This document shows, piece after piece, positions 29,120 to 43,588 of a DNA stretch of 64,000 nt. The stretch comes from Adineta vaga. Lineage: Eukaryota; Animalia; Rotifera. Location: NCBI GenBank assembly GCA_021613535.1, contig CP075494.1:186001-250000 (forward strand). Direction: 5' to 3'. Numbering within the stretch: the stretch's first letter is position 1; the number at the start of each line of letters is the position of its first letter. The position numbers and the translations under genes are program-made. The notes below the pieces were generated by a model that made no database searches, was not told the origin of the DNA, and saw only the letters and a program-made list of their open reading frames with translations.

Positions 29120-29196
29120 ATCTTGAGGGTGGGTGTGGGTGTGAAAGAAGAGGAGATACCCACAACCTCATCCACACCCACACCCACCCTCAAGAT
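29120..29196. repeat. Best-preserved copy of the telomere-repeat hairpin family (~25 copies in window)
   Basis: ATCTTGAGGGTGGGTGTGGGTGTG-AAAGAAGAGGAG...-CACACCCACACCCACCCTCAAGAT. Confidence 0.9.
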
Positions 29197-31076: not shown

Positions 31077-31361
31077 AATAACACGGAGAAAATATAATTT
31101 TTTTAAATAAAAATAAAATCTTTAATAAAATATGACTGTTGAATTTATATTCACATTATATTAGAAATTAAAACTGAATATTAATATTCAAAATAAATTA
31201 TTTCATGTTCTTCTATACAAACGGCATTTTATTTGTTTATTAATTCATAAGAAATTAAATAACTACTCAAAAAGTACCAATCAATACACTATAAGGTAGT
31301 AAACATCAGGGTTGCCAGATTGTCTGAAAAGTCAGGAAAGTGTCTGAATTTTGGAGGTTTT

Positions 31362-31526
31362 TCAACTATACGAAAAAGAAAGCAGTTGGTTATTTCCTGT
31401 TCGAAAGAAATAACCGATTTATCAAAGAATAAAATGTTTGAGATAGAAAAGAAAAAAAAAGAGTTGTTTTGTTTTATGTAGTTTATTGACTAGTTTCTGT
31501 CAAGTTAAGACTTGACTTCATCAGAA
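31362..31526 (-). repeat. 3' pseudo-LTR (165 bp), directly repeated at 35644-35808 and inverted at 40070-40234
   Basis: Match read by eye from TCAACTATACG to CATCAGAA. Confidence 0.92.
31488..31524 (-). ncRNA. Minimal hammerhead ribozyme core, copy 1
   Basis: CUGAUGA - stem II GUCAAGU/ACUUGAC - GAAA - palindromic ACUAGU - GUC cleavage triplet. Confidence 0.85.
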
Positions 31527-31729
31527 CTTATATACAAAAAAACTCTAATTAAATTATAAATACAAGAAAAAACTTGGAATGAAAAAATGCAAAGAACTAT
31601 GCTAGGGCTTGAAGAGCCCATGACAATGCAAACTAGGGCTAGATGAGCCCTTAGTTTTTCAAACTCTGTTTTAATTTCTTCTTCTTACTTAGGAAACGAG
31701 AAGAAGATGTGGGTAGGTTTGCTTGCAAA

Positions 31730-33586
31730 TTATTTTAGGAATACTTTATTTGGTTTTTTATGTACTAAATAATCTAGAAGATTGTTTAATCTTCTAGAAC
31801 CAACGATAGGTTTCCTATTACAAATTGGTGTATCCGAGAAACATTCATTCCAGAGTTTATGAAAACTGGTCGTAAATTCGCTCATACCTTTACAAAAGGA
31901 AAAATGGCACATTATGTTGACCTCGAAATCAATTTTCTTTTCTGTTTTTTCATTTCTTTTTTCATTTAGAAAAGTTTTTCTTATATGCAAGAAATTCTTT
32001 TGTGTCGGAACTGCACAATGAAAAGCTTGCGAGACTCTTTCAAATTGTTTCAAAATGAAATTAAGTGGATATTGGTTTAAGAGCAATGACATGCATATAT
32101 GCGCTTCTTCTAGTTTGTAATCATCATAACTTGAAGAGTATCTTATTGCTCGAACGAGAGCAACGAAAGGAATATTCCTTTTTATATGTTGTGCATGTAC
32201 ACTAGAGAAAGGGAGAAAATATAATTCATGTGATGGTTTATGATAAACTTTTGATATTAGTTTTCCTCCTCTGTTCTCAAATTCTACGTCAAGATATTGA
32301 ACGTTCTTTCCTATTGATTCAGAAAAAACGATATTTTTATCAATTCTATTCCAGAATTTAACAAGACCTTTTAATATATCTTCATGTATGTTTGACATGA
32401 TGAATAAGTCATCGATATATCTATAGTATAATGAGAACGTTCTATTAGCCCATTTTGCAATGGGACGTTCAACGAAATACATATATGTATTAGCTATGGT
32501 GAGGGTGAGTGGCGAACCCATGGCGCCTCCTCTTATCTGTTTGTAATATGACCCGTCAAAATAGAAATAATTATTAGTTATAACAAATCTGGTAAGAGCT
32601 AAGATAATTTCTTTCTTAATGCCGTCAATTTGTTTTAGATTATGTTCTTCTAATAATCTTTTTATAGCTACCACTCCCCCTTCTTGCGGGATCATTGTGT
32701 AAAGATCAGTCACATCCATAGATATGAATGTAGTTGATGATGTGAGATAATTATCTGACCATCTTTCAACTGACTTAATCAATTGAGTACCGTTTTCAAT
32801 TGCTATATCAAGAGCTAATTGATTGAATAACGGTCTTAATAAATCATCTAACCATTTAGATATACCTATAGTTGGTGATTTCATTCCAGCTACTATGGGT
32901 CTTAATGGTGTATTAGGTTTATGTGCTTTTGGCAAAAAATACAGGTGAGCTAATTCTGCTTCTTCCCGTTGTACTTTTAGGTTTTCATAATGTTTCTGGG
33001 TTATATGTTTATTAACCCATAGAGCATATAGAAATTCATTTGTACGTTTAACTAATGCATCAAGTGGGTTTATTCCTTCTAAATCTTGATATGCATCTGT
33101 TTTTATCATATATGTTCGAGCTTTAAATATATGATCATCAGTTGTACCGAGATGAAAAACTTTTGATTTATCTGTCTTTCTGATGATTGTTTTCGTTGCT
33201 TCGAACTTTCTTTCTAGATTTTTGATTATCTTTAAATGATCTGATGGAAGATATTTATTATGACAATTAGTCAATATCTGTGTTAATGAATCTTTAAAGA
33301 ATTCAAAACGTTGAACAGGTAATATCCATCCATGTTCACCAAAAATCTTATTTATTTTTCTCATAACCACATCTATCTCATTATTCATACGTTTATGTGC
33401 AAGATGAGGGTTATCAGGTATATATTTAGGGCCGAGTTTTAATAGATCATATTCGACCCTATCTAAATTTATGTTAGTTTCATTAATTATATTTGGAGCG
33501 TGAAATCCTTTCGTAATACTGGATTCATTTTTCGTGCTTCCTGTATTTCGAAGGGCGTCTCTTTGACGCTGCGTTCGTCTAAAAAA
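31730..33586 (-). CDS. PLE/Athena reverse transcriptase; N-terminus entered by predicted -1 frameshift
   Basis: LLKLGPKYIP, LYFLPKAHKP-PLRPIV, DVTDLYT, GAMGSPL, YRYIDD, YLDV, VYHKP. The frame is open upstream of the annotated ATG (33388) as far as the slippery site. Confidence 0.93.
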   Translation of the reverse strand, partial: FFRRTQRQRDALRNTGSTKNESSITKGFHAPNIINETNINLDRVEYDLLKLGPKYIPDNPHLAHKRMNNEIDVVMRKINKIFGEHGWILPVQRFEFFKDSLTQILTNCHNKYLPSDHLKIIKNLERKFEATKTIIRKTDKSKVFHLGTTDDHIFKARTYMIKTDAYQDLEGINPLDALVKRTNEFLYALWVNKHITQKHYENLKVQREEAELAHLYFLPKAHKPNTPLRPIVAGMKSPTIGISKWLDDLLRPLFNQLALDIAIENGTQLIKSVERWSDNYLTSSTTFISMDVTDLYTMIPQEGGVVAIKRLLEEHNLKQIDGIKKEIILALTRFVITNNYFYFDGSYYKQIRGGAMGSPLTLTIANTYMYFVERPIAKWANRTFSLYYRYIDDLFIMSNIHEDILKGLVKFWNRIDKNIVFSESIGKNVQYLDVEFENRGGKLISKVYHKPSHELYFLPFSSVHAQHIKRNIPFVALVRAIRYSSSYDDYKLEEAHICMSLLLNQYPLNFILKQFERVSQAFHCAVPTQKNFLHIRKTFLNEKRNEKTEKKIDFEVNIMCHFSFCKGMSEFTTSFHKLWNECFSDTPICNRKPIVGSRRLNNLLDYLVHKKPNKVFLK

Positions 33587-35532
33587 AGAACTTCTCGTTC
33601 TATTTCTAGTAATGCTTTTTTGTACGAAATTTCAACATATTCTGTAAACATTTCAGAACCTTTTGATTCAATTATATCTATTTGTGTTCGTACTCTTTGC
33701 GTGAAACAACCATTATTATCAGCTTCATCACCGTCATTTTTATCGATTGCCGCCGCCTGCTGTATTTGTGTCAGTGGCACATCATATGTATCTGGTGGAA
33801 AATCTCTCAGAAGTTTATCTAATCTTTCATTCTGAAAATCATATTCACCTTTAGCAACTTTCAAATATAATTCCGTTGCTTTTATACGAAAATCTTTCGA
33901 TAATTCTTCTATACTTTTCTTATTCTTTAGGATTTCTTCAGCTGATAGTGAAGATTCATCCATGGGAAGAGAAAAATCATACTGTGGTAAGTTTTTCGGT
34001 ATAATATCATTTGAAATATGAGCTGCTACCAATTCAAAGTTTTTCTTCTTTTTGTGGTAGGCTTTCAAGGCTGGTCTACAGAAGGTATTGGCATATATTT
34101 TCTGTTGTTCAGTTGCCATATTTTCAAATGCCTTCAATGCAGTCCATTCATCTTTTTCTAAAGATGCACGACGTATTCTTATATTGTTCATTTTCGTTAA
34201 TCCTATTGTAGATTCTTTAATATAGTCAAGCATTAGATCATGTACTCTTTTAGGAGCATTGGCTATAGCTTGTATATTTTGATTAGAAGAGAATTTGTCG
34301 ATGGTTCGTGTTATGATGTCATTTGCATCGATACATGCTGATGTAAAATGTGATATTTTATTTTCACATAACGATAAATTTCTTTTATCATCACGGGTAT
34401 GTGTTTTATCGACAATTTCTTTGGCCCAATGATCTTTATTCTTTCCTAGTTCATAGAATTGTTGCCAGACCTGGGCTTCATAATGATTATATACCCATTT
34501 ATCGTATGTCGGAAGAGTGTCCTTCGCATACTTGTATATTTCATTGAAGGAATCTTTTAAATCTTTCATTTTTCTGTCATTTAGTTTGACTTTTAGATAT
34601 GAAAGAATTTTATAATCTTGTAAATATAATTTCAATTTACGTTTATCTGTAGGTGATCGTGATGATACTTCATCACTACTACGATCTCTGTCATTTACAG
34701 TAAGAAAAAGATCGTCACTTTTATGTTGATTTATTCTTATTCTATCTGTATTAACTTCGTTTGTTGTGTTAGTTTGTTTAGCAACAACAATATTATCTTT
34801 TCGCATATTCGAAGTAGGTTTTCTTTTTTTAGGTGATTTATTTTTATTCATGGCACGTATTTGATTATTATTATCTGCTTCAGCCTCTGAATTATCTGCT
34901 TCTGTATCATCATCATTTTCTGACAAAATAATGAAACGATTATCATTTAATCGACCTAATTCTTCATTACGTTTATTAGGTAAGAATGCTCGATTTCTCT
35001 GACGTCTTTCTCTTCTTCGAAGAGTGTTGAGATGAGCTTTGTCTGATGTTTTCTTTTTCTTGGATTGTACATCATTATTTTTATTATTATTCATATTCTT
35101 CTGATGAATGGGCATCGTCTTTGATTGCCTACTATTATCAGGTAAATCTATTTGATTTAAATTTTGCCATGTTTCAGGCATGAAATCAACTAAACGTCTT
35201 TGCTTTGGTGTATTACGTTGACGATTGTTTTTGAAATTTCCACGTCGTGGAGTTACTGATCGTTTTCGATTATCATATGATGGCTTTCCATCCTTTCTAC
35301 TATATTTAGACTGATCCTTATTCCATGATGATGAACCATCAAATGGATAGAAAAATGGTGGTGGTGCTAATGGAAAGGGCATTTGCTGCCCATTAACCAT
35401 ACCTCCCGACCAATTCATTGGTATATTATTTGGACCAAATACAGATGATTGAAAACCATAACCATGTTTTTGTGGTTGTTGAATACCATATGGATAACCA
35501 ATTGGATATTGTTGATCATATGTTGGAAACAT
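33487..35532 (-). CDS. ORF1 of the Athena-like element: P/Q/G/Y-rich N-terminus, basic region, helical coiled-coil C-terminus
   Basis: ~680-aa ORF directly upstream of and overlapping the RT frame; first ATG at 35532. Confidence 0.85.
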   Translation of the reverse strand: MFPTYDQQYPIGYPYGIQQPQKHGYGFQSSVFGPNNIPMNWSGGMVNGQQMPFPLAPPPFFYPFDGSSSWNKDQSKYSRKDGKPSYDNRKRSVTPRRGNFKNNRQRNTPKQRRLVDFMPETWQNLNQIDLPDNSRQSKTMPIHQKNMNNNKNNDVQSKKKKTSDKAHLNTLRRRERRQRNRAFLPNKRNEELGRLNDNRFIILSENDDDTEADNSEAEADNNNQIRAMNKNKSPKKRKPTSNMRKDNIVVAKQTNTTNEVNTDRIRINQHKSDDLFLTVNDRDRSSDEVSSRSPTDKRKLKLYLQDYKILSYLKVKLNDRKMKDLKDSFNEIYKYAKDTLPTYDKWVYNHYEAQVWQQFYELGKNKDHWAKEIVDKTHTRDDKRNLSLCENKISHFTSACIDANDIITRTIDKFSSNQNIQAIANAPKRVHDLMLDYIKESTIGLTKMNNIRIRRASLEKDEWTALKAFENMATEQQKIYANTFCRPALKAYHKKKKNFELVAAHISNDIIPKNLPQYDFSLPMDESSLSAEEILKNKKSIEELSKDFRIKATELYLKVAKGEYDFQNERLDKLLRDFPPDTYDVPLTQIQQAAAIDKNDGDEADNNGCFTQRVRTQIDIIESKGSEMFTEYVEISYKKALLEIEREVLFLDERSVKETPFEIQEARKMNPVLRKDFTLQI

Positions 35533-35608
35533 ATTCTCACTATTCTCAATAGTATTATTCAAGATAAAAGAAGAACTACTTTCGAGCTACTTTAAGATCT
35601 TACGACTC

Positions 35609-35646
35609 TATATAAAATAGCTAACTAACGACAAACTAAATACTCA
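35609..35646 (+). promoter_or_regulatory. Putative antisense TATA/Inr promoter at the pLTR boundary
   Basis: TATATAAAA at 35609-35617, ~30 nt before TACTCAACT where the pLTR begins. Confidence 0.45.
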
Positions 35647-35769
35647 ACTATACGAAAAAGAAAGCAGTTGGTTATTTCCTGTTCGAAAGAAATAACCGAT
35701 TTATCAAAGAATAAAATGTTTGAGATAGAAAAGAAAAAAAAAGAGTTGTTTTGTTTTATGTAGTTTATT

Positions 35770-35806
35770 GACTAGTTTCTGTCAAGTTAAGACTTGACTT
35801 CATCAG
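35770..35806 (-). ncRNA. Minimal hammerhead ribozyme core, copy 2 (upstream of ORF1)
   Basis: Same core as copy 1. Confidence 0.85.
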
Positions 35807-36153
35807 AATCTAGAAGAAAAAGCAATGGTTTAGAAAAAAAGTAAAGAATTTTATTAAAAACAAATGTTTATAAGATCGGTTCTCGTAAGGGAAGCTATAT
35901 ATGTTTATCTTATCCTGTATACCAGGAAGATCTTATGTGAATTGTTGAATTTCATTCAGTATTTATAGTCCCCGATACTGATCCTGATTGGTATTTTAGA
36001 AGAGATATTAATGGATCAATCAGATGTCTAGTCTTAAACGACTAATAGGCGTCGAAGATAGACTATTCAAGGTGTTAAAAATGTTCAAAGGTTATTTGGT
36101 AAAACTTTGATGTAAAAAAAGGAAAATTTCAAGAAAAAAAACATTAATAAAAG

Positions 36154-36229
36154 TGGTACCGGATGCGAGATTCGAACTCGCCGTCATCGGTGTGACACAC
36201 CATTGATCCACTCAATCGTCTAGTACGGT
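36154..36229 (-). tRNA. tRNA-like sequence, 76 nt, GTC at anticodon positions, encoded CCA, imperfect stems
   Basis: U8, A9, G10, A14, U33, A37 in register; perfect T-arm GCGAG-TTCGAAT-CTCGC; A73-CCA, then C-TTTT. Mismatches in acceptor (2), D (2) and anticodon (1) stems. Confidence 0.7.
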
Positions 36230-36544
36230 TATACACGCATTCAAAATCTCACTTAATTATTGAAAGCATTAATCTATGTTATAGGATAGAATACTTCTTA
36301 AGTTTTCTTTGATAGAATGGAGAAAACATTTGATTGAACAGTTAAGGAATTTCTTAGAAGACCAATCATTTTGATCTGTGTGTGCTATATAAACAGACGA
36401 TTTCGTTGTAGTTGACACAAGATCATCACTTTCCTATAGACATCATCTCGAATATCAGAGAATGTATTTAGGGAATTTTGAGCCTTGATTAACAGCATAG
36501 TCGTTGGAATGACTTTATTAATCCTTTTCTTTTTTTTACTCTAG

Positions 36545-37261
36545 ATGACACCCACTTCGAATGCTCAAAACTCTGCTGTCTCGGGCGATGATGGAGTAGC
36601 GCGTGATGTTGCTTTTCAGGCACTGAGTCCATTCTCCGGAGCCTTCTCTCCGACCGAAGTTCGAGAGCAACTGGTTGGTCCGATTCTAAATGGTCCACCA
36701 ACGTCCATTTGGAGGAGGACCACCATTTCGCATTCCAATGCTGACGGGTCCTTCTGTCTGTATGCTTGTGAGAGAACAGGAGAAGCCATGTGGGTACCTA
36801 GTGGCGAGCATTTTGTGGCCGACAGGTCACAAAGAGGGCAGTCAACTGGAACTGTCATGGACTACCTGTTCTCACGAAGTGGTCAGACAACTGGACCACG
36901 AGGCTATGGGTTTCATCATACTGGTCGTACGGTTTCTGGCGAGAACAGGAATGTTCATCGACCCAGAAATATTCATGCCAGTATGGTGGATAGATCGGAG
37001 AGAACCGGGTCTACTCGACTGATTCGCTTCAGTCCAATGGCTTGTCATCAACCATCTGCGGCCGGAATGGGGACCAGGAGAACGATAGCCCGGCGAGAAC
37101 GCAGAGAAAATGCACGCAGTTCTGGCGGTACAACAACACCACAACCACCAGTAACTCCATCAACCAATTCTACAACCACCACCACCGTTACCAATAACTC
37201 TATAAATGAAACAAGTCCACAACTCCAACAGCTGAATTTATCAGACGAAGAGGCGATGTGA
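36545..37261 (+). CDS. Antisense accessory ORF of the retroelement (238 aa, unknown; Thr-rich tail)
   Basis: GC-richer ORF preceded by TATATAAA (36386) and a polypyrimidine-AG acceptor directly before the ATG. Confidence 0.55.
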   Translation: MTPTSNAQNSAVSGDDGVARDVAFQALSPFSGAFSPTEVREQLVGPILNGPPTSIWRRTTISHSNADGSFCLYACERTGEAMWVPSGEHFVADRSQRGQSTGTVMDYLFSRSGQTTGPRGYGFHHTGRTVSGENRNVHRPRNIHASMVDRSERTGSTRLIRFSPMACHQPSAAGMGTRRTIARRERRENARSSGGTTTPQPPVTPSTNSTTTTTVTNNSINETSPQLQQLNLSDEEAM

Positions 37262-37632
37262 AGACGTGTGGCACATTAGGCCCTCGTCTTCCTCCCTCTT
37301 CCATATCTCTTGCTCTCATTCATTGTTCATTCGACACTTTCTAGTGTCAGGTTAGAGAGGCCCATATGGCCATCAACCCCCATTTCGTTTCATCAAATAC
37401 AACCGCATAATCACTAGAATTATCATCTAAATCACCAGCACATAATCCGAAAAATATTCTAAAAAGAAATACTCCACTAAAAGTAAAGAGAAATGATAAA
37501 CATTAGAAATCAAATACCTTTCGAAGAAAATTGAATAGAAAAGTTAATCTCTTACTTCACTCAAAAAGATCAGAAACCAACACAACTAATATATATCATA
37601 CAACTCATGCCACTAAAATATAACATCTTCCC

Positions 37633-38109
37633 ATGGATGAATCTTCACTATCAGCTGAAGAAATCCTAAAGAATAAGAAAAGTATAGAAGAATTATCGAA
37701 AGATTTTCGTATAAAAGCAACGGAATTATATTTGAAAGTTGCTAAAGGTGAATATGATTTTCAGAATGAAAGATTAGATAAACTTCTGAGAGATTTTCCA
37801 CCAGATACATATGATGTGCCACTGACACAAATACAGCAGGCGGCGGCAATCGATAAAAATGACGGTGATGAAGCTGATAATAATGGTTGTTTCACGCAAA
37901 GAGTACGAACACAAATAGATATAATTGAATCAAAAGGTTCTGAAATGTTTACAGAATATGTTGAAATTTCGTACAAAAAAGCATTACTAGAAATAGAACG
38001 AGAAGTTCTTTTTTTAGACGAACGCAGCGTCAAAGAGACGCCCTTCGAAATACAGGAAGCACGAAAAATGAATCCAGTATTACGAAAGGATTTCACGCTC
38101 CAAATATAA
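37633..38109 (+). pseudogene. 5'-truncated ORF1 in the inverted copy
   Basis: Identical to the last 158 aa of ORF1; identity starts abruptly at 37626. Confidence 0.85.
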
Positions 38110-39866
38110 TTAATGAAACTAACATAAATTTAGATAGGGTCGAATATGATCTATTAAAACTCGGCCCTAAATATATACCTGATAACCCTCATCTTGCACA
38201 TAAACGTATGAATAATGAGATAGATGTGGTTATGAGAAAAATAAATAAGATTTTTGGTGAACATGGATGGATATTACCTGTTCAACGTTTTGAATTCTTT
38301 AAAGATTCATTAACACAGATATTGACTAATTGTCATAATAAATATCTTCCATCAGATCATTTAAAGATAATCAAAAATCTAGAAAGAAAGTTCGAAGCAA
38401 CGAAAACAATCATCAGAAAGACAGATAAATCAAAAGTTTTTCATCTCGGTACAACTGATGATCATATATTTAAAGCTCGAACATATATGATAAAAACAGA
38501 TGCATATCAAGATTTAGAAGGAATAAACCCACTTGATGCATTAGTTAAACGTACAAATGAATTTCTATATGCTCTATGGGTTAATAAACATATAACCCAG
38601 AAACATTATGAAAACCTAAAAGTACAACGGGAAGAAGCAGAATTAGCTCACCTGTATTTTTTGCCAAAAGCACATAAACCTAATACACCATTAAGACCCA
38701 TAGTAGCTGGAATGAAATCACCAACTATAGGTATATCTAAATGGTTAGATGATTTATTAAGACCGTTATTCAATCAATTAGCTCTTGATATAGCAATTGA
38801 AAACGGTACTCAATTGATTAAGTCAGTTGAAAGATGGTCAGATAATTATCTCACATCATCAACTACATTCATATCTATGGATGTGACTGATCTTTACACA
38901 ATGATCCCGCAAGAAGGGGGAGTGGTAGCTATAAAAAGATTATTAGAAGAACATAATCTAAAACAAATTGACGGCATTAAGAAAGAAATTATCTTAGCTC
39001 TTACCAGATTTGTTATAACTAATAATTATTTCTATTTTGACGGGTCATATTACAAACAGATAAGAGGAGGCGCCATGGGTTCGCCACTCACCCTCACCAT
39101 AGCTAATACATATATGTATTTCGTTGAACGTCCCATTGCAAAATGGGCTAATAGAACGTTCTCATTATACTATAGATATATCGATGACTTATTCATCATG
39201 TCAAACATACATGAAGATATATTAAAAGGTCTTGTTAAATTCTGGAATAGAATTGATAAAAATATCGTTTTTTCTGAATCAATAGGAAAGAACGTTCAAT
39301 ATCTTGACGTAGAATTTGAGAACAGAGGAGGAAAACTAATATCAAAAGTTTATCATAAACCATCACATGAATTATATTTTCTCCCTTTCTCTAGTGTACA
39401 TGCACAACATATAAAAAGGAATATTCCTTTCGTTGCTCTCGTTCGAGCAATAAGATACTCTTCAAGTTATGATGATTACAAACTAGAAGAAGCGCATATA
39501 TGCATGTCATTGCTCTTAAACCAATATCCACTTAATTTCATTTTGAAACAATTTGAAAGAGTCTCGCAAGCTTTTCATTGTGCAGTTCCGACACAAAAGA
39601 ATTTCTTGCATATAAGAAAAACTTTTCTAAATGAAAAAAGAAATGAAAAAACAGAAAAGAAAATTGATTTCGAGGTCAACATAATGTGCCATTTTTCCTT
39701 TTGTAAAGGTATGAGCGAATTTACGACCAGTTTTCATAAACTCTGGAATGAATGTTTCTCGGATACACCAATTTGTAATAGGAAACCTATCGTTGGTTCT
39801 AGAAGATTAAACAATCTTCTAGATTATTTAGTACATAAAAAACCAAATAAAGTATTCCTAAAATAA
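38010..39866 (+). CDS. Second identical copy of the PLE reverse transcriptase
   Basis: Protein identical to that of 31730-33388; slippery heptamer at 38010-38016. Confidence 0.9.
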   Translation, partial: FFRRTQRQRDALRNTGSTKNESSITKGFHAPNIINETNINLDRVEYDLLKLGPKYIPDNPHLAHKRMNNEIDVVMRKINKIFGEHGWILPVQRFEFFKDSLTQILTNCHNKYLPSDHLKIIKNLERKFEATKTIIRKTDKSKVFHLGTTDDHIFKARTYMIKTDAYQDLEGINPLDALVKRTNEFLYALWVNKHITQKHYENLKVQREEAELAHLYFLPKAHKPNTPLRPIVAGMKSPTIGISKWLDDLLRPLFNQLALDIAIENGTQLIKSVERWSDNYLTSSTTFISMDVTDLYTMIPQEGGVVAIKRLLEEHNLKQIDGIKKEIILALTRFVITNNYFYFDGSYYKQIRGGAMGSPLTLTIANTYMYFVERPIAKWANRTFSLYYRYIDDLFIMSNIHEDILKGLVKFWNRIDKNIVFSESIGKNVQYLDVEFENRGGKLISKVYHKPSHELYFLPFSSVHAQHIKRNIPFVALVRAIRYSSSYDDYKLEEAHICMSLLLNQYPLNFILKQFERVSQAFHCAVPTQKNFLHIRKTFLNEKRNEKTEKKIDFEVNIMCHFSFCKGMSEFTTSFHKLWNECFSDTPICNRKPIVGSRRLNNLLDYLVHKKPNKVFLK

Positions 39867-40071
39867 TTTGCAAGCAAACCTACCCACATCTTCTTCTCGT
39901 TTCCTAAGTAAGAAGAAGAAATTAAAACAGAGTTTGAAAAACTAAGGGCTCATCTAGCCCTAGTTTGCATTGTCATGGGCTCTTCAAGCCCTAGCATAGT
40001 TCTTTGCATTTTTTCATTCCAAGTTTTTTCTTGTATTTATAATTTAATTAGAGTTTTTTTGTATATAAGTT

Positions 40072-40108
40072 CTGATGAAGTCAAGTCTTAACTTGACAGA
40101 AACTAGTC
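40072..40108 (+). ncRNA. Minimal hammerhead ribozyme core, copy 3
   Basis: CTGATGAAGTCAAGTCTTAACTTGACAGAAACTAGTC; predicted cleavage after C40108. Confidence 0.85.
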
Positions 40109-40313
40109 AATAAACTACATAAAACAAAACAACTCTTTTTTTTTCTTTTCTATCTCAAACATTTTATTCTTTGATAAATCGGTTATTTCTTTCGAACAGG
40201 AAATAACCAACTGCTTTCTTTTTCGTATAGTTGAATAATCTCCTTTTCTTTTGAATTCTAATCTTTTCTATATATTACAGCTTTTTTAAATGAAATTAAA
40301 GACTATATCATAA

Positions 40314-40439
40314 TCATTAGTTAGTGCTGAACTTAAGATAAGAATGAATGGTAATTATTCATGTAAACAATTTTATAAACATGTTTTAGCTGAAACTCAT
40401 TTGTTGAAACAAATTCGAAAAAATGGAAAATATGAATAA
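40314..40439 (+). pseudogene. C-terminal remnant of hAT transposase
   Basis: SLVSAELKIRMNGNYSCKQFYKHVL...LLKQIRKNGKYE* resembles the C-termini of hAT transposases and lies inside the right TIR. Confidence 0.6.
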
Positions 40440-41622
40440 TAATATTCAATCGATGCTATGTAAACTTCAACTGTTTTTGATGAAATCTCATAACTTGTAT
40501 AATAATATTGTGATTTATTTTTGTATTTTTTTGTGAACCAGTTTTTGTTTAGCGAAAGAATCCGACACTAAGTGTCTTCATTTGTTCTTTCTTGTTACTT
40601 AAACAGTATACTCATTGTATTTTTTTTTATCATAGTGGAATATCTTTGAAAATAAATTATGAATTAATAAACCACAGCTCAATAGAGAATTTTATGAAGA
40701 CCATAAAATACAATTATCGTCAGATTCTTTCAAAAAATACCCTTTCTGATTTTTTTCTGATTTCGTCAAAAAATCTTCTGACGACTTTCTGATTTTGAAA
40801 AAAAAATTTCTGATTTTTCATTTTTTCATCTGGCAACCCTGGTAAACATATCGTTCCATTCTTCGTAATTCTGTCTTATATGCTCAAAGTATGGAAATAG
40901 TGAATCTAAAAGAATCTTTTTACTAGAAAAAGAAGTTCGTTTTGAAGAAAGATAAAGACAATATTCTTACTTGTTACTATGTTTGCTCATTTTCTGATGA
41001 AAAACTTTGAATGTAAAATATTTCTTTGTTCTATGAGTTCTCGCGTGAAAAATAGAAAAACGTGGAAAAATGCCAGTTTTCATTCTATTATTTTTTAAAA
41101 ATATATTATTCAATCACGCGAATATTTTTCTCTTTAAAAATATAACTTCTTCTTTTCCCGTTGATTGAATATAGTTATAAAAAGCTGAAATGTGTGTGTG
41201 TGAGGGTGTGGGTGGTTGTGGGTGTGGGTGTGATTGCTTCATGTTAGTTTACACCCACACCCACCCACACTCTCAAGATGCGTGTCAACAATAAGGTGCG
41301 TAGAAAAATACATGTGGATGTGGTATCATTTTTCGTTCTTTGAATTGAAGGTGCATGAGTTGCAAAAGTGGCGTTGTATGTCTCTCATAGCCGTTGTTCT
41401 GTTATTCTCTCTTGACTCATATTGATCTTTCTCGCTCAAGAGCTGAGAAAAGAAAAGAAAAGAGAAGAATGATCTGATAACTGCCCCACTCTTTGACTCA
41501 TTGTATTCCATTCTCACCAGCAGCCGGAAAAAACGAACATCTCACGAGAGAGAAAAACTACCAACCTGTATAATAACGCGATAAAAGACATTATTACCTT
41601 CACTTTACTTTTGTGACCTGCA

Positions 41623-42702
41623 ATGGCTTTTCTCCAACGACCTTGGCAACGCGCAAAGGGAATTGAATGGATGTGGCAATCGAACGAGAATCCATTCGAT
41701 CTATCGCAAAAATCAGAATGGAAGAGTTATTCAGATGTTGAAACTATAGTCATAGAAGAAGCGTATCAGAAGAAACAGTCAGCAGTGTTGCTCGATCAAT
41801 ATCATATTAATTTAGAACAACTTATTCAAGTTTCGAATATCGATGAGAAAAAACAACGGCCCGTCAAACGAATTGCTCTGAGTACTGCACAGTGGAGGGT
41901 AAGAAAAGAACGCTTTCTTGCCGATCCTATTGAACCTTCTAAACCGTTTTCTACAACCCGTTCGCATGATTTCCTTGTCGAAACAGTGGCATATTATAAC
42001 CTTTGGTACACCGATGAATCTCGTTTGCTCATAGAAAAAGCAGCAGAAGGACTTACCGTCGAAGGCAAACTGCTTGGTACAGAATGGGAAGGACGACAAA
42101 TGGCAGAACTGTTACTCCTCTACAAAGATTATTCTCGGGAAGAAATTGTACAAATGTGTGCCTATCTGTATTCGTTTGACTCATTTCTCTATCGAAAACT
42201 AAATGAAATCATGCGTCTTATTGAAGACAATTGCTATGAACATGTGTGGAAGAGTAAAGTACCCACTTTGGGTCCTTTCGCTTATCTGCTGAACTGTTTG
42301 GCTACAGGAATAAAGTATTCAATAGATTTACCGGTAGAATCCATGACAGTCTATCGTGGATGCAACCTGTCTGCGGAAGCAATTGAAAAATTCAAAGCAT
42401 TTCATACGGAACACCAGGCACATAATTATCATACATCATGGATTTCATTTTTATCGTTTACATCGACCAGCCGAAGTAGAGAAAAAGCAGAATTTATAGG
42501 TGGTAATGCACTCTTCATAATTAAAATTTGTACTCATTACGAAGGTTGTGATATTTCTCCATACTCGCGATTTGATGAAGAAGAGTTTCTTCTCATACCA
42601 ACATTCTCATTCTTGATTGTTTCATGTAATTACGACGAGCATGTTCATAAATGGATTATTGGTCTTGAATCAGCTAATTCTTTTCATAATTCGAGATGTT
42701 AA
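41623..42702 (+). CDS. WWE-domain mono-ADP-ribosyltransferase (R-S-E type)
   Basis: WMWQ...WKSYSD...IEEAY WWE domain; LYRKLN, VYRG, FTSTS, EEEFLL. Confidence 0.88.
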   Translation: MAFLQRPWQRAKGIEWMWQSNENPFDLSQKSEWKSYSDVETIVIEEAYQKKQSAVLLDQYHINLEQLIQVSNIDEKKQRPVKRIALSTAQWRVRKERFLADPIEPSKPFSTTRSHDFLVETVAYYNLWYTDESRLLIEKAAEGLTVEGKLLGTEWEGRQMAELLLLYKDYSREEIVQMCAYLYSFDSFLYRKLNEIMRLIEDNCYEHVWKSKVPTLGPFAYLLNCLATGIKYSIDLPVESMTVYRGCNLSAEAIEKFKAFHTEHQAHNYHTSWISFLSFTSTSRSREKAEFIGGNALFIIKICTHYEGCDISPYSRFDEEEFLLIPTFSFLIVSCNYDEHVHKWIIGLESANSFHNSRC

Positions 42703-43588
42703 TCACTTGTTTATATCAAAGAATGCCTAGAAAGTAGGATCTTATACTCAAGAAGGTAAAGAAGTGTAACTAAAATAAAATACGCCATTAGCCTGTTTGA
42801 AACTCTTGTTATGCTTGACTAGTAATAAAAACGGCATTGCTGTCACTACTTATCATTAGTGTCTGTTCTTTGGGTATGGGTGGGTGTGGGTGAAGGTGAA
42901 GAGAAGAGTATTACCCACACCCACTCACCCTTCTCAAAGTTGCAAAGGAACATTTCGAACTGTCTGCTCGATATCTACTACTTTTTCATCAGGTGTTAAT
43001 TTTACTGCTTCACAATTTTTTAATCGAATTAATAAATCGTCTGTATTACAAAAAGTCAAATGTGAAGTGAATAAAAATAATCTTCATTCCCCACAACATC
43101 ATAAATTCTTAAAAACCAATCAAAATATTGCAAACCCACGAGATTTATCGATGCTTACCATAACGGCCATTGAGAAGAAAGTGCTTGAAGCTTATGAATG
43201 TAATTAAACTTTATAGTCCATTAAAAGTCAAATAACTTTCATCGAATGGTCGAATAATATCGATTTCAGTAGTGAGTGACATCATCTCACGATATATGGA
43301 TAGATTTTGGTCTACCGAACTTGGTGATATCAATAGTTTGAGTGTGAAATTAGATAACGAATCGGACAATCTTGAGGGTGGGTGTGTGTGTGTCTTTATA
43401 TAAAAGAAATCCACATACACTTCCACCCACACCCACACCCACCCACACCCACACCCACACCCACACCCACACCCACCCTCAAGATGGCAATAACTTGTTT
43501 TTTTTATACACTTGAATTACATTGTTATATCGTTACAATTCGACAGAATCACAAATTTTTTATATTTATTTTAAAATGTCATCTCAAT

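Follow-up and report, generated by a model that had tools for sequence, protein, structure and literature searches.

The hAT frame

The stretch of DNA analysed here (hereafter, the window) comprises 64,000 nucleotides from Adineta vaga, a bdelloid rotifer, corresponding to positions 186001-250000 of contig C5 in a haploid assembly (100.8 Mb, 6 contigs). Its central feature is a hAT DNA transposon at 31307-40841, the interior of which is occupied by an endonuclease-less (EN-less) Penelope-like element (PLE); positions given without a contig name are those of the window. The transposon begins with the 14-bp terminal inverted repeat (TIR) CAGGGTTGCCAGAT at 31307-31320, and at 40828-40841 it ends with the reverse complement, the match being perfect over all 14 bp. 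Identical 8-bp target-site duplications (TSDs), GTAAACAT, lie immediately outside the TIRs at 31299-31306 and 40842-40849. The target pattern of hAT elements is nTnnnnAn, which the duplication fits, as do the TSDs of two hAT relatives. The exact 14-mer occurs only five times in the genome, two of these occurrences being the ends of this frame; with up to one mismatch allowed, 30 genomic sites are found, several of which pair up, versus 2 for a reversed control pattern.

The left arm of the transposon (31307-31362, plus strand) is 56 bp long and consists of the TIR and subterminal sequence with two TCTGA motifs. It is homologous along 56-57 nt to seven relatives, five from metagenomes and two genomic, with 84-91% identity to the metagenome sequences; the right TIR, searched with up to 2 mismatches, was not found in those contigs of the metagenome relatives that were examined. 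The right arm (40234-40841, plus strand) holds a decayed relic of the transposase C-terminus at approximately 40290-40440 along with TCTGA repeats, and closes with the right TIR. Five TCTGA motifs occur in its last 142 bp, against 0.18 expected for that length from the window average, and 40212-40433 matches the last 73 residues (138-210) of a transposase fragment of the family with 47% identity and three stops (E 1.8e-11). An earlier, sequence-only reading of this DNA had proposed the TIRs, the perfect TSD, the subterminal repeats and the transposase relic, and each of these is upheld.

Members of the same family occur elsewhere in the genome. For example, an 800-bp relative (C2:15069042-15069841) carries the TSD CTTCTGAA, and a 24.5-kb relative (C2:153955-178510) is flanked by the perfect TSD GTTTATAT. 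The last open frame in the larger of the two (C2:176287-176916) matches the hAT dimerisation domain, Dimer_Tnp_hAT (PF05699, E 5.7e-8). Because these relatives bear 8-bp TSDs of their own, and one of them a hAT dimerisation domain, the 31307-40841 frame can be recognised from its sequence as a real hAT, and as a non-autonomous member of the family. When the insert is removed, the remaining shell of 56 + 608 bp aligns end to end with the 800-bp relative, and it is because of this collinearity that the shell can be identified as a miniature inverted-repeat transposable element (MITE)-like deletion derivative of about 660 bp already before the insertion, rather than a gutted transposon. The sequence-only reading, which gave hAT remnants of about 55 bp on the left and 600 bp on the right, was correct in these sizes, but the larger hAT that its wording implies is contradicted by the collinear 800-bp relative.

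The transposase of the 24.5-kb relative lies in broken pieces, interrupted and out of frame, and this decayed copy is the sole transposase-bearing member of the family found in the assembly. It is also packed with tandem repeats and foreign open reading frames (ORFs), including a zinc-finger ORF and a weak KDZ-transposase match that falls below the cut-off, and about 17.8 kb separate its left end from the transposase remnants. Copies of the family are approximately 80% alike, a level that suggests an old hAT family. Finally, a 3.3-kb hAT further along contig C5 (C5:988500-991778) has the TIRs CAGGGTTGCCAAAC and CAGGGTTGCCAAAT and open frames of 216, 202 and 390 aa, with subterminal repeats of the CTCCTGG type and no matching TSD; despite its almost identical TIR, it evidently represents a different family.

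The retroelement insert

The insert (31363-40233, 8.9 kb) is composed of a full-length minus-strand PLE, about 6.3 kb long, and an inverted, 5'-truncated copy of 2,608 bp. Read from left to right, the full-length copy starts with its 3' pseudo-long terminal repeat (pLTR; 31363-31539, minus strand, the 178-nt repeat match covering 31362-31539), whose terminus is fixed by three copies in the window and by C2:16121652. The reverse transcriptase (RT) gene follows, i.e., ORF552 (31730-33388, minus strand, 552 aa, lacking an endonuclease domain), and upstream of it lies ORF691 (33487-35562, minus strand, 691 aa), an ORF1-like frame that has no Pfam family and is kept in A. ricciae. An internal, upstream pLTR of 178 nt (35644-35821, minus strand) is 97% identical to the 3' pLTR. 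Located in the 5' region beyond it (35822-37625, minus strand), which is collinear with A. ricciae as far as 37397, are the antisense ORF238 (36545-37261, plus strand) and, on the minus strand, a tRNA-like stretch (36154-36229). The second copy (37626-40233, plus strand) retains the final 160 codons of ORF691 together with the RT ORF (38208-39866) and a 3' pLTR. In all copies, three in the window and the relative on C2, the element terminates at its 3' side with ...CGTATAGTTG(A).

The two arms of the insert (31363-33970 and 37626-40233) are 2,608 bp each, inverted, and identical at every position, and between them lie 3,655 bp of asymmetric sequence. The sequence-only reading had described the whole as an 8.9-kb palindrome; this description applies to the perfect inverted arms but not to the centre, which is asymmetric and is part of the element. 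The asymmetric centre can be assigned to the element, rather than viewed as filler, because 31375-37397 has a collinear counterpart, 84% identical in DNA, on an A. ricciae contig (L024). Both the internal pLTR and the antisense ORF238 are present in that contig, the former at the equivalent place (L024 3231-3415). A mosaic centre produced by template switching, with a captured tRNA, was considered and ruled out; the entire centre, including the tRNA-like piece, is conserved and collinear in A. ricciae. The segment 37398-37625 falls outside this collinearity. Within the A. vaga assembly, the nearest other piece of the retroelement family is a 776-bp fragment with 86% identity at C2:16.12 Mb, and at C1:1.27 Mb an interstitial relative persists as a decayed fragment without layout information.

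ORF552 matches RVT_1, and over 343 aa it shares 27% identity (E 6e-31) with the RT portion of a 1310-aa GIY-YIG Penelope ORF of the same genome. No GIY-YIG match is found in ORF552 itself, PF01541 is absent from the precomputed Pfam listings of its best 120 homologues, and a mere 367 bp, devoid of any long ORF, separate its stop codon from the end of the element; the absence of an endonuclease, as claimed in the sequence-only reading, is borne out accordingly. Domains listed for the ORF552 homologues include DUF8422 and HTH_animal, and the close homologues that are named are all from bdelloids (Adineta, Rotaria). In comparison with A. ricciae, ORF552 is 90% identical with a dN/dS of 0.10, ORF691 has 77% amino acid identity with a dN/dS of 0.31, and ORF238, which has no Pfam match, has 84% amino acid identity with a dN/dS of 0.30. 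The three ORFs, open in the window and in A. ricciae alike, are evidently under purifying selection. A 49% relative of ORF238 exists at C2:186684-187343, and this frame would seem to be a third gene of the EN-less PLE family, oriented divergently. The insert as a whole can probably be classified as an EN-less PLE of the Athena kind, in the sense of an Athena-like element rather than a proven member of the clade.

Two further motifs deserve mention. A hammerhead-like core (CTGATGA, a 6-bp stem, GAAAC, the palindromic ACTAGT, and C) occurs exactly at the start of all three pLTRs, at 31488-31524 and 35770-35806 on the minus strand and at 40072-40108 on the plus strand, and it is kept both in A. 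ricciae and in the 86% relative at C2:16.12 Mb. The tRNA-like stretch possesses a CCA end and a TTCGAAT T-loop, and is about 88% conserved in A. ricciae, where one compensatory change has occurred in the T-stem and CCA has become CTA; neither ARAGORN nor Rfam calls a tRNA there. Its conservation is in keeping with a constituent of the element, and not with a sequence captured during the insertion at this site.

Junctions and target loss

Both outer junctions are formed by 3' ends of the element, with the RT genes reading outward to 31363 on the left and 40233 on the right, and no TSD surrounds the retroelement insert itself. On the left, homology to the seven relatives runs to 31362, after which 7/7 continue with TCTGA repeats that are missing from the window. 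On the right, the junction is followed by some 11 nt of uncertain origin, and then hAT homology resumes. The insertion splits the left TCTGA array and has apparently removed part of it, and a loss of approximately 40-50 bp of hAT subterminal repeat sequence may be inferred from these alignments. The head-to-head joint of the two copies (37625/37626) shows neither telomeric repeats nor a palindrome, and no TGTGGG/CCCACA runs occur anywhere within 31307-40841.

Searches of the haploid assembly with the left junction and right hAT arm, and with the body and the centre of the insert, returned only self-matches. The 10 nt immediately outside the two element ends (31353-31362 and 40234-40243) form an imperfect inverted pair (8/10, P ~0.0025); the possibility that the 10 nt flanking the left 3' end are part of the element was ruled out, as hAT sequence is found there.

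Origin of the nested structure

The anatomy of the locus, its family relations and its single-copy status are observations, from which the order of events, the break and the priming at both ends can be inferred. It is quite likely that the structure arose by a two-step nested insertion, in which an EN-less PLE filled a break inside a resident hAT. In the first step, a non-autonomous hAT of about 0.7 kb, having kept only the last codons of its transposase, would have inserted by cut-and-paste and generated the 8-bp TSD. In the second, a later break would have arisen in the hAT DNA, 56 bp from its left end, and the 3'-OH exposed on either side of it would have primed reverse transcription from the 3' end of the element RNA. 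The left end would thus have acquired the full-length copy of about 6.3 kb and the right end the 2.6-kb, 5'-truncated copy, with the two cDNA heads being joined at 37625/37626. Because each primed strand would gain an antisense copy, the genes would read outward on both sides, and the expected outcome is an insert with both 3' ends facing outward, no TSD, and some 40-50 bp of the hAT subterminal repeats gone.

The sequence-only reading had offered the use of a break within the hAT by the RT element as the first of two alternatives, and the outward 3' ends, the missing TSD, the small loss inferred and the lack of telomeric repeats all lend support to it. Double-strand breaks are the presumed priming sites of EN-deficient PLEs (PMC3846280), the usual PLE layout is that of a full copy with an adjacent, inverted and 5'-truncated copy (PMC8557442), and the locus fits a published finding, in A. 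vaga lines, of deletion breakpoints with Athena fragments (PMC13564844).

Several points weigh against this account. The order of events follows from parsimony, and a single copy is compatible with an Athena landing in a hAT and with the landing of a ready-made composite alike. The size of the deletion is uncertain, being derived from relatives that are 80-91% identical and variable in length in precisely this region. The arms without mismatches could reflect gene conversion or assembly polishing instead of youth. The Rfam covariance models return no hammerhead at E <= 1 in the pLTRs, and the element is without the reverse-complement telomeric repeats described for the 3' ends of Athena.

Other routes to the same structure lead through the broken ends or through the source of the cut. 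Had the break left two free chromosome ends, each of them capped separately through an Athena-type addition before a later head-to-head fusion, the 3' ends would likewise be predicted to face outward. Capped ends are described as gaining telomeric repeats (PMC3846280), however, and none are found at 37625/37626 or elsewhere in the insert; because the joint is unmarked by such repeats, and with the identical arms suggesting a single episode, healing followed by rejoining is an unlikely course of events. If it is counted together with direct filling of the break, repair of a break by the retroelement becomes very likely. A cut supplied in trans, in which the GIY-YIG endonuclease of a canonical Penelope opened the hAT and integrated the EN-less element, is favoured by a layout of pLTRs and inverted copy that is the same as in elements with an endonuclease (PMC3846280), and by the presence of ORFs of such Penelopes in the genome. 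This route is nevertheless extremely improbable in view of the TSD-less insert and the target deletion inferred for it, the mere 27% identity between its RT and that of the endonuclease-bearing element, and a published survey in which no sign of Penelope co-mobilising Athena was seen (PMC3846280).

The second alternative of the sequence-only reading was that the retroelement had entered a hAT elsewhere and that a transposase acting in trans had moved the 9.5-kb composite to its present site, making the GTAAACAT TSD upon arrival. The perfect TIRs and TSD and the survival of TCTGA repeats on both sides are what such a history would leave, and the 24.5-kb relative with its perfect TSD indicates that large members with intact ends are possible, even if its cargo may have been gained after insertion. 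Against it, every test that was run came out negative. A search for copies of the junctions with different TSDs, as the sequence-only reading had advised, met only self-matches in the haploid assembly, so that both junctions, like the retroelement family, are single-copy there. The one transposase-bearing family member found is the decayed copy, with its interrupted, out-of-frame transposase, and the 3.3-kb hAT on contig C5 is near-identical in its TIR but has other subterminal repeats and is evidently of another family. The family is old, with copies about 80% alike, and the insert lies within the left repeat array, part of which has seemingly been removed. Movement of the composite as a unit is accordingly rated very improbable, and it is slightly less probable still that the hAT ends continue to work, such that the composite arrived, or can leave, by cut-and-paste with a transposase in trans; if true, such mobility would provide an EN-less retroelement with a DNA-transposon route to new sites. 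There is, finally, only the faintest chance that fold-back or polishing during long-read assembly produced the inverted 2.6-kb arm as an artefact. Its perfect identity over 2,608 bp would suit an artefact, and the tandem and inverted structures of PLEs are known to trouble assemblies (PMC8557442). An artefact would not, however, recreate two flanks that together make up a single hAT, its TIRs and TSD matching, and the asymmetric centre is conserved in another species, A. ricciae.

Filling of a break inside the resident hAT remains the preferred explanation, and, within its bdelloid subtelomere, the locus amounts to an ordinary nested insertion and a well-framed example of EN-independent PLE integration, with no new mode of mobility in evidence. 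Its usefulness lies in the hAT frame, which serves as a ruler: the matching TIRs and TSD prove that the flanks of the insert were once only a few tens of bp apart. The locus is thereby a clean natural record of an internal break filled by an EN-less PLE, with both junctions readable.

Comparison with known systems

The non-autonomous, MITE-like hATs are the closest counterpart of the shell, which shares with them short TIRs starting with CAG, an 8-bp TSD, short subterminal repeats and remains of the C-terminal end of a transposase, and is similar to them in size (about 0.66-0.8 kb); the nested insert is its only unusual trait.

Endonuclease-independent insertion of LINE-1 at DNA breaks, reportedly a finding of Morrish et al. 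in 2002, offers a parallel for the insertion event. In both cases cDNA fills a break, no TSD is made and target bases are lost. Unlike LINE-1, the element in the window employs another class of RT, and both broken ends were apparently primed, giving rise to a head-to-head pair.

As for the element itself, Athena elements are described as the endonuclease-deficient PLEs of bdelloids (Gladyshev and Arkhipova 2007, as related in PMC3846280, PMC8557442 and PMC6431247). The insert resembles them in its PLE-type RT without GIY-YIG, its combination of ORF1 and RT ORF, a unit size in the range of 4-6 kb, its bdelloid host and its subtelomeric location, and a related family in the same genome (L022) adjoins TGTGGG repeats at its 3' side. 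It differs from Athena in that its 3' end lacks the reverse-complement telomeric repeats that Athena bears there beside a hammerhead (PMC8557442), in that neither end of the copy carries telomeric repeats, and in the upstream presence of an antisense ORF, its third, and of a tRNA-like stretch. Whereas Athena is attached to telomeric repeats and capped by them at its 5' end, here each 3' end borders on hAT DNA and the 5' ends meet. Terminons, with multiple ORFs and lengths of tens of kb, are likewise unlike the present unit of approximately 6.3 kb and three ORFs.

The layout is that of canonical Penelope elements (PMC3846280, PMC8557442), in that a 178-nt pLTR bounds the body on either side, each pLTR starts with a hammerhead-like motif, and a truncated copy lies in inverted orientation on the 5' side. 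The endonuclease, the TSD and the 30-40-bp tail of canonical Penelope are all missing, however, suggesting that the PLE layout does not need an endonuclease of the element's own. The occurrence of the classic layout in an EN-less element bears on the idea that the cleavage properties of the endonuclease shape it (PMC8557442).

Genomic setting

The locus lies 217-227 kb from the end of the contig. At least 10 short tracts of TGTGGG telomeric repeats, in both orientations, are scattered between 21569 and 61865 of the window, among genes and relics of transposable elements, and the nearest of them, at 29171-29188 and 41195-41234, bound the 12-kb block that bears the hAT. Besides the hAT locus, the window contains an integrase relic and a mariner-like relic, together with host-type genes for an SDR, a GPCR, an ART/WWE protein, a helicase-IBR-PARP protein and an F-box protein. 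The setting is the patchwork, telomere-repeat-studded subtelomere described for bdelloids, and not plain gene-rich interstitial DNA as the sequence-only reading had it; telomeric tracts, transposon relics and host genes are mixed in the surroundings.

No paralogous empty site was found in the assembly, the relatives of the left flank ending 340 bp before the site and telomere-like repeats being the sole matches of the right flank in the same search. An exact-protein look-up gave no match for the RT or for either flanking ORF. Finally, a segment of the ART/WWE gene (41355-42851) is 91% identical at the DNA level to contigs of GCA_905250885.1 and GCA_905249995.1, both labelled as Didymodactylos carnosus assemblies. 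This homology begins at 41355, past the telomeric tract at 41195-41234, and is therefore uninformative about the hAT site; it could be due to cross-species contamination of those assemblies or to a shared mobile fragment.

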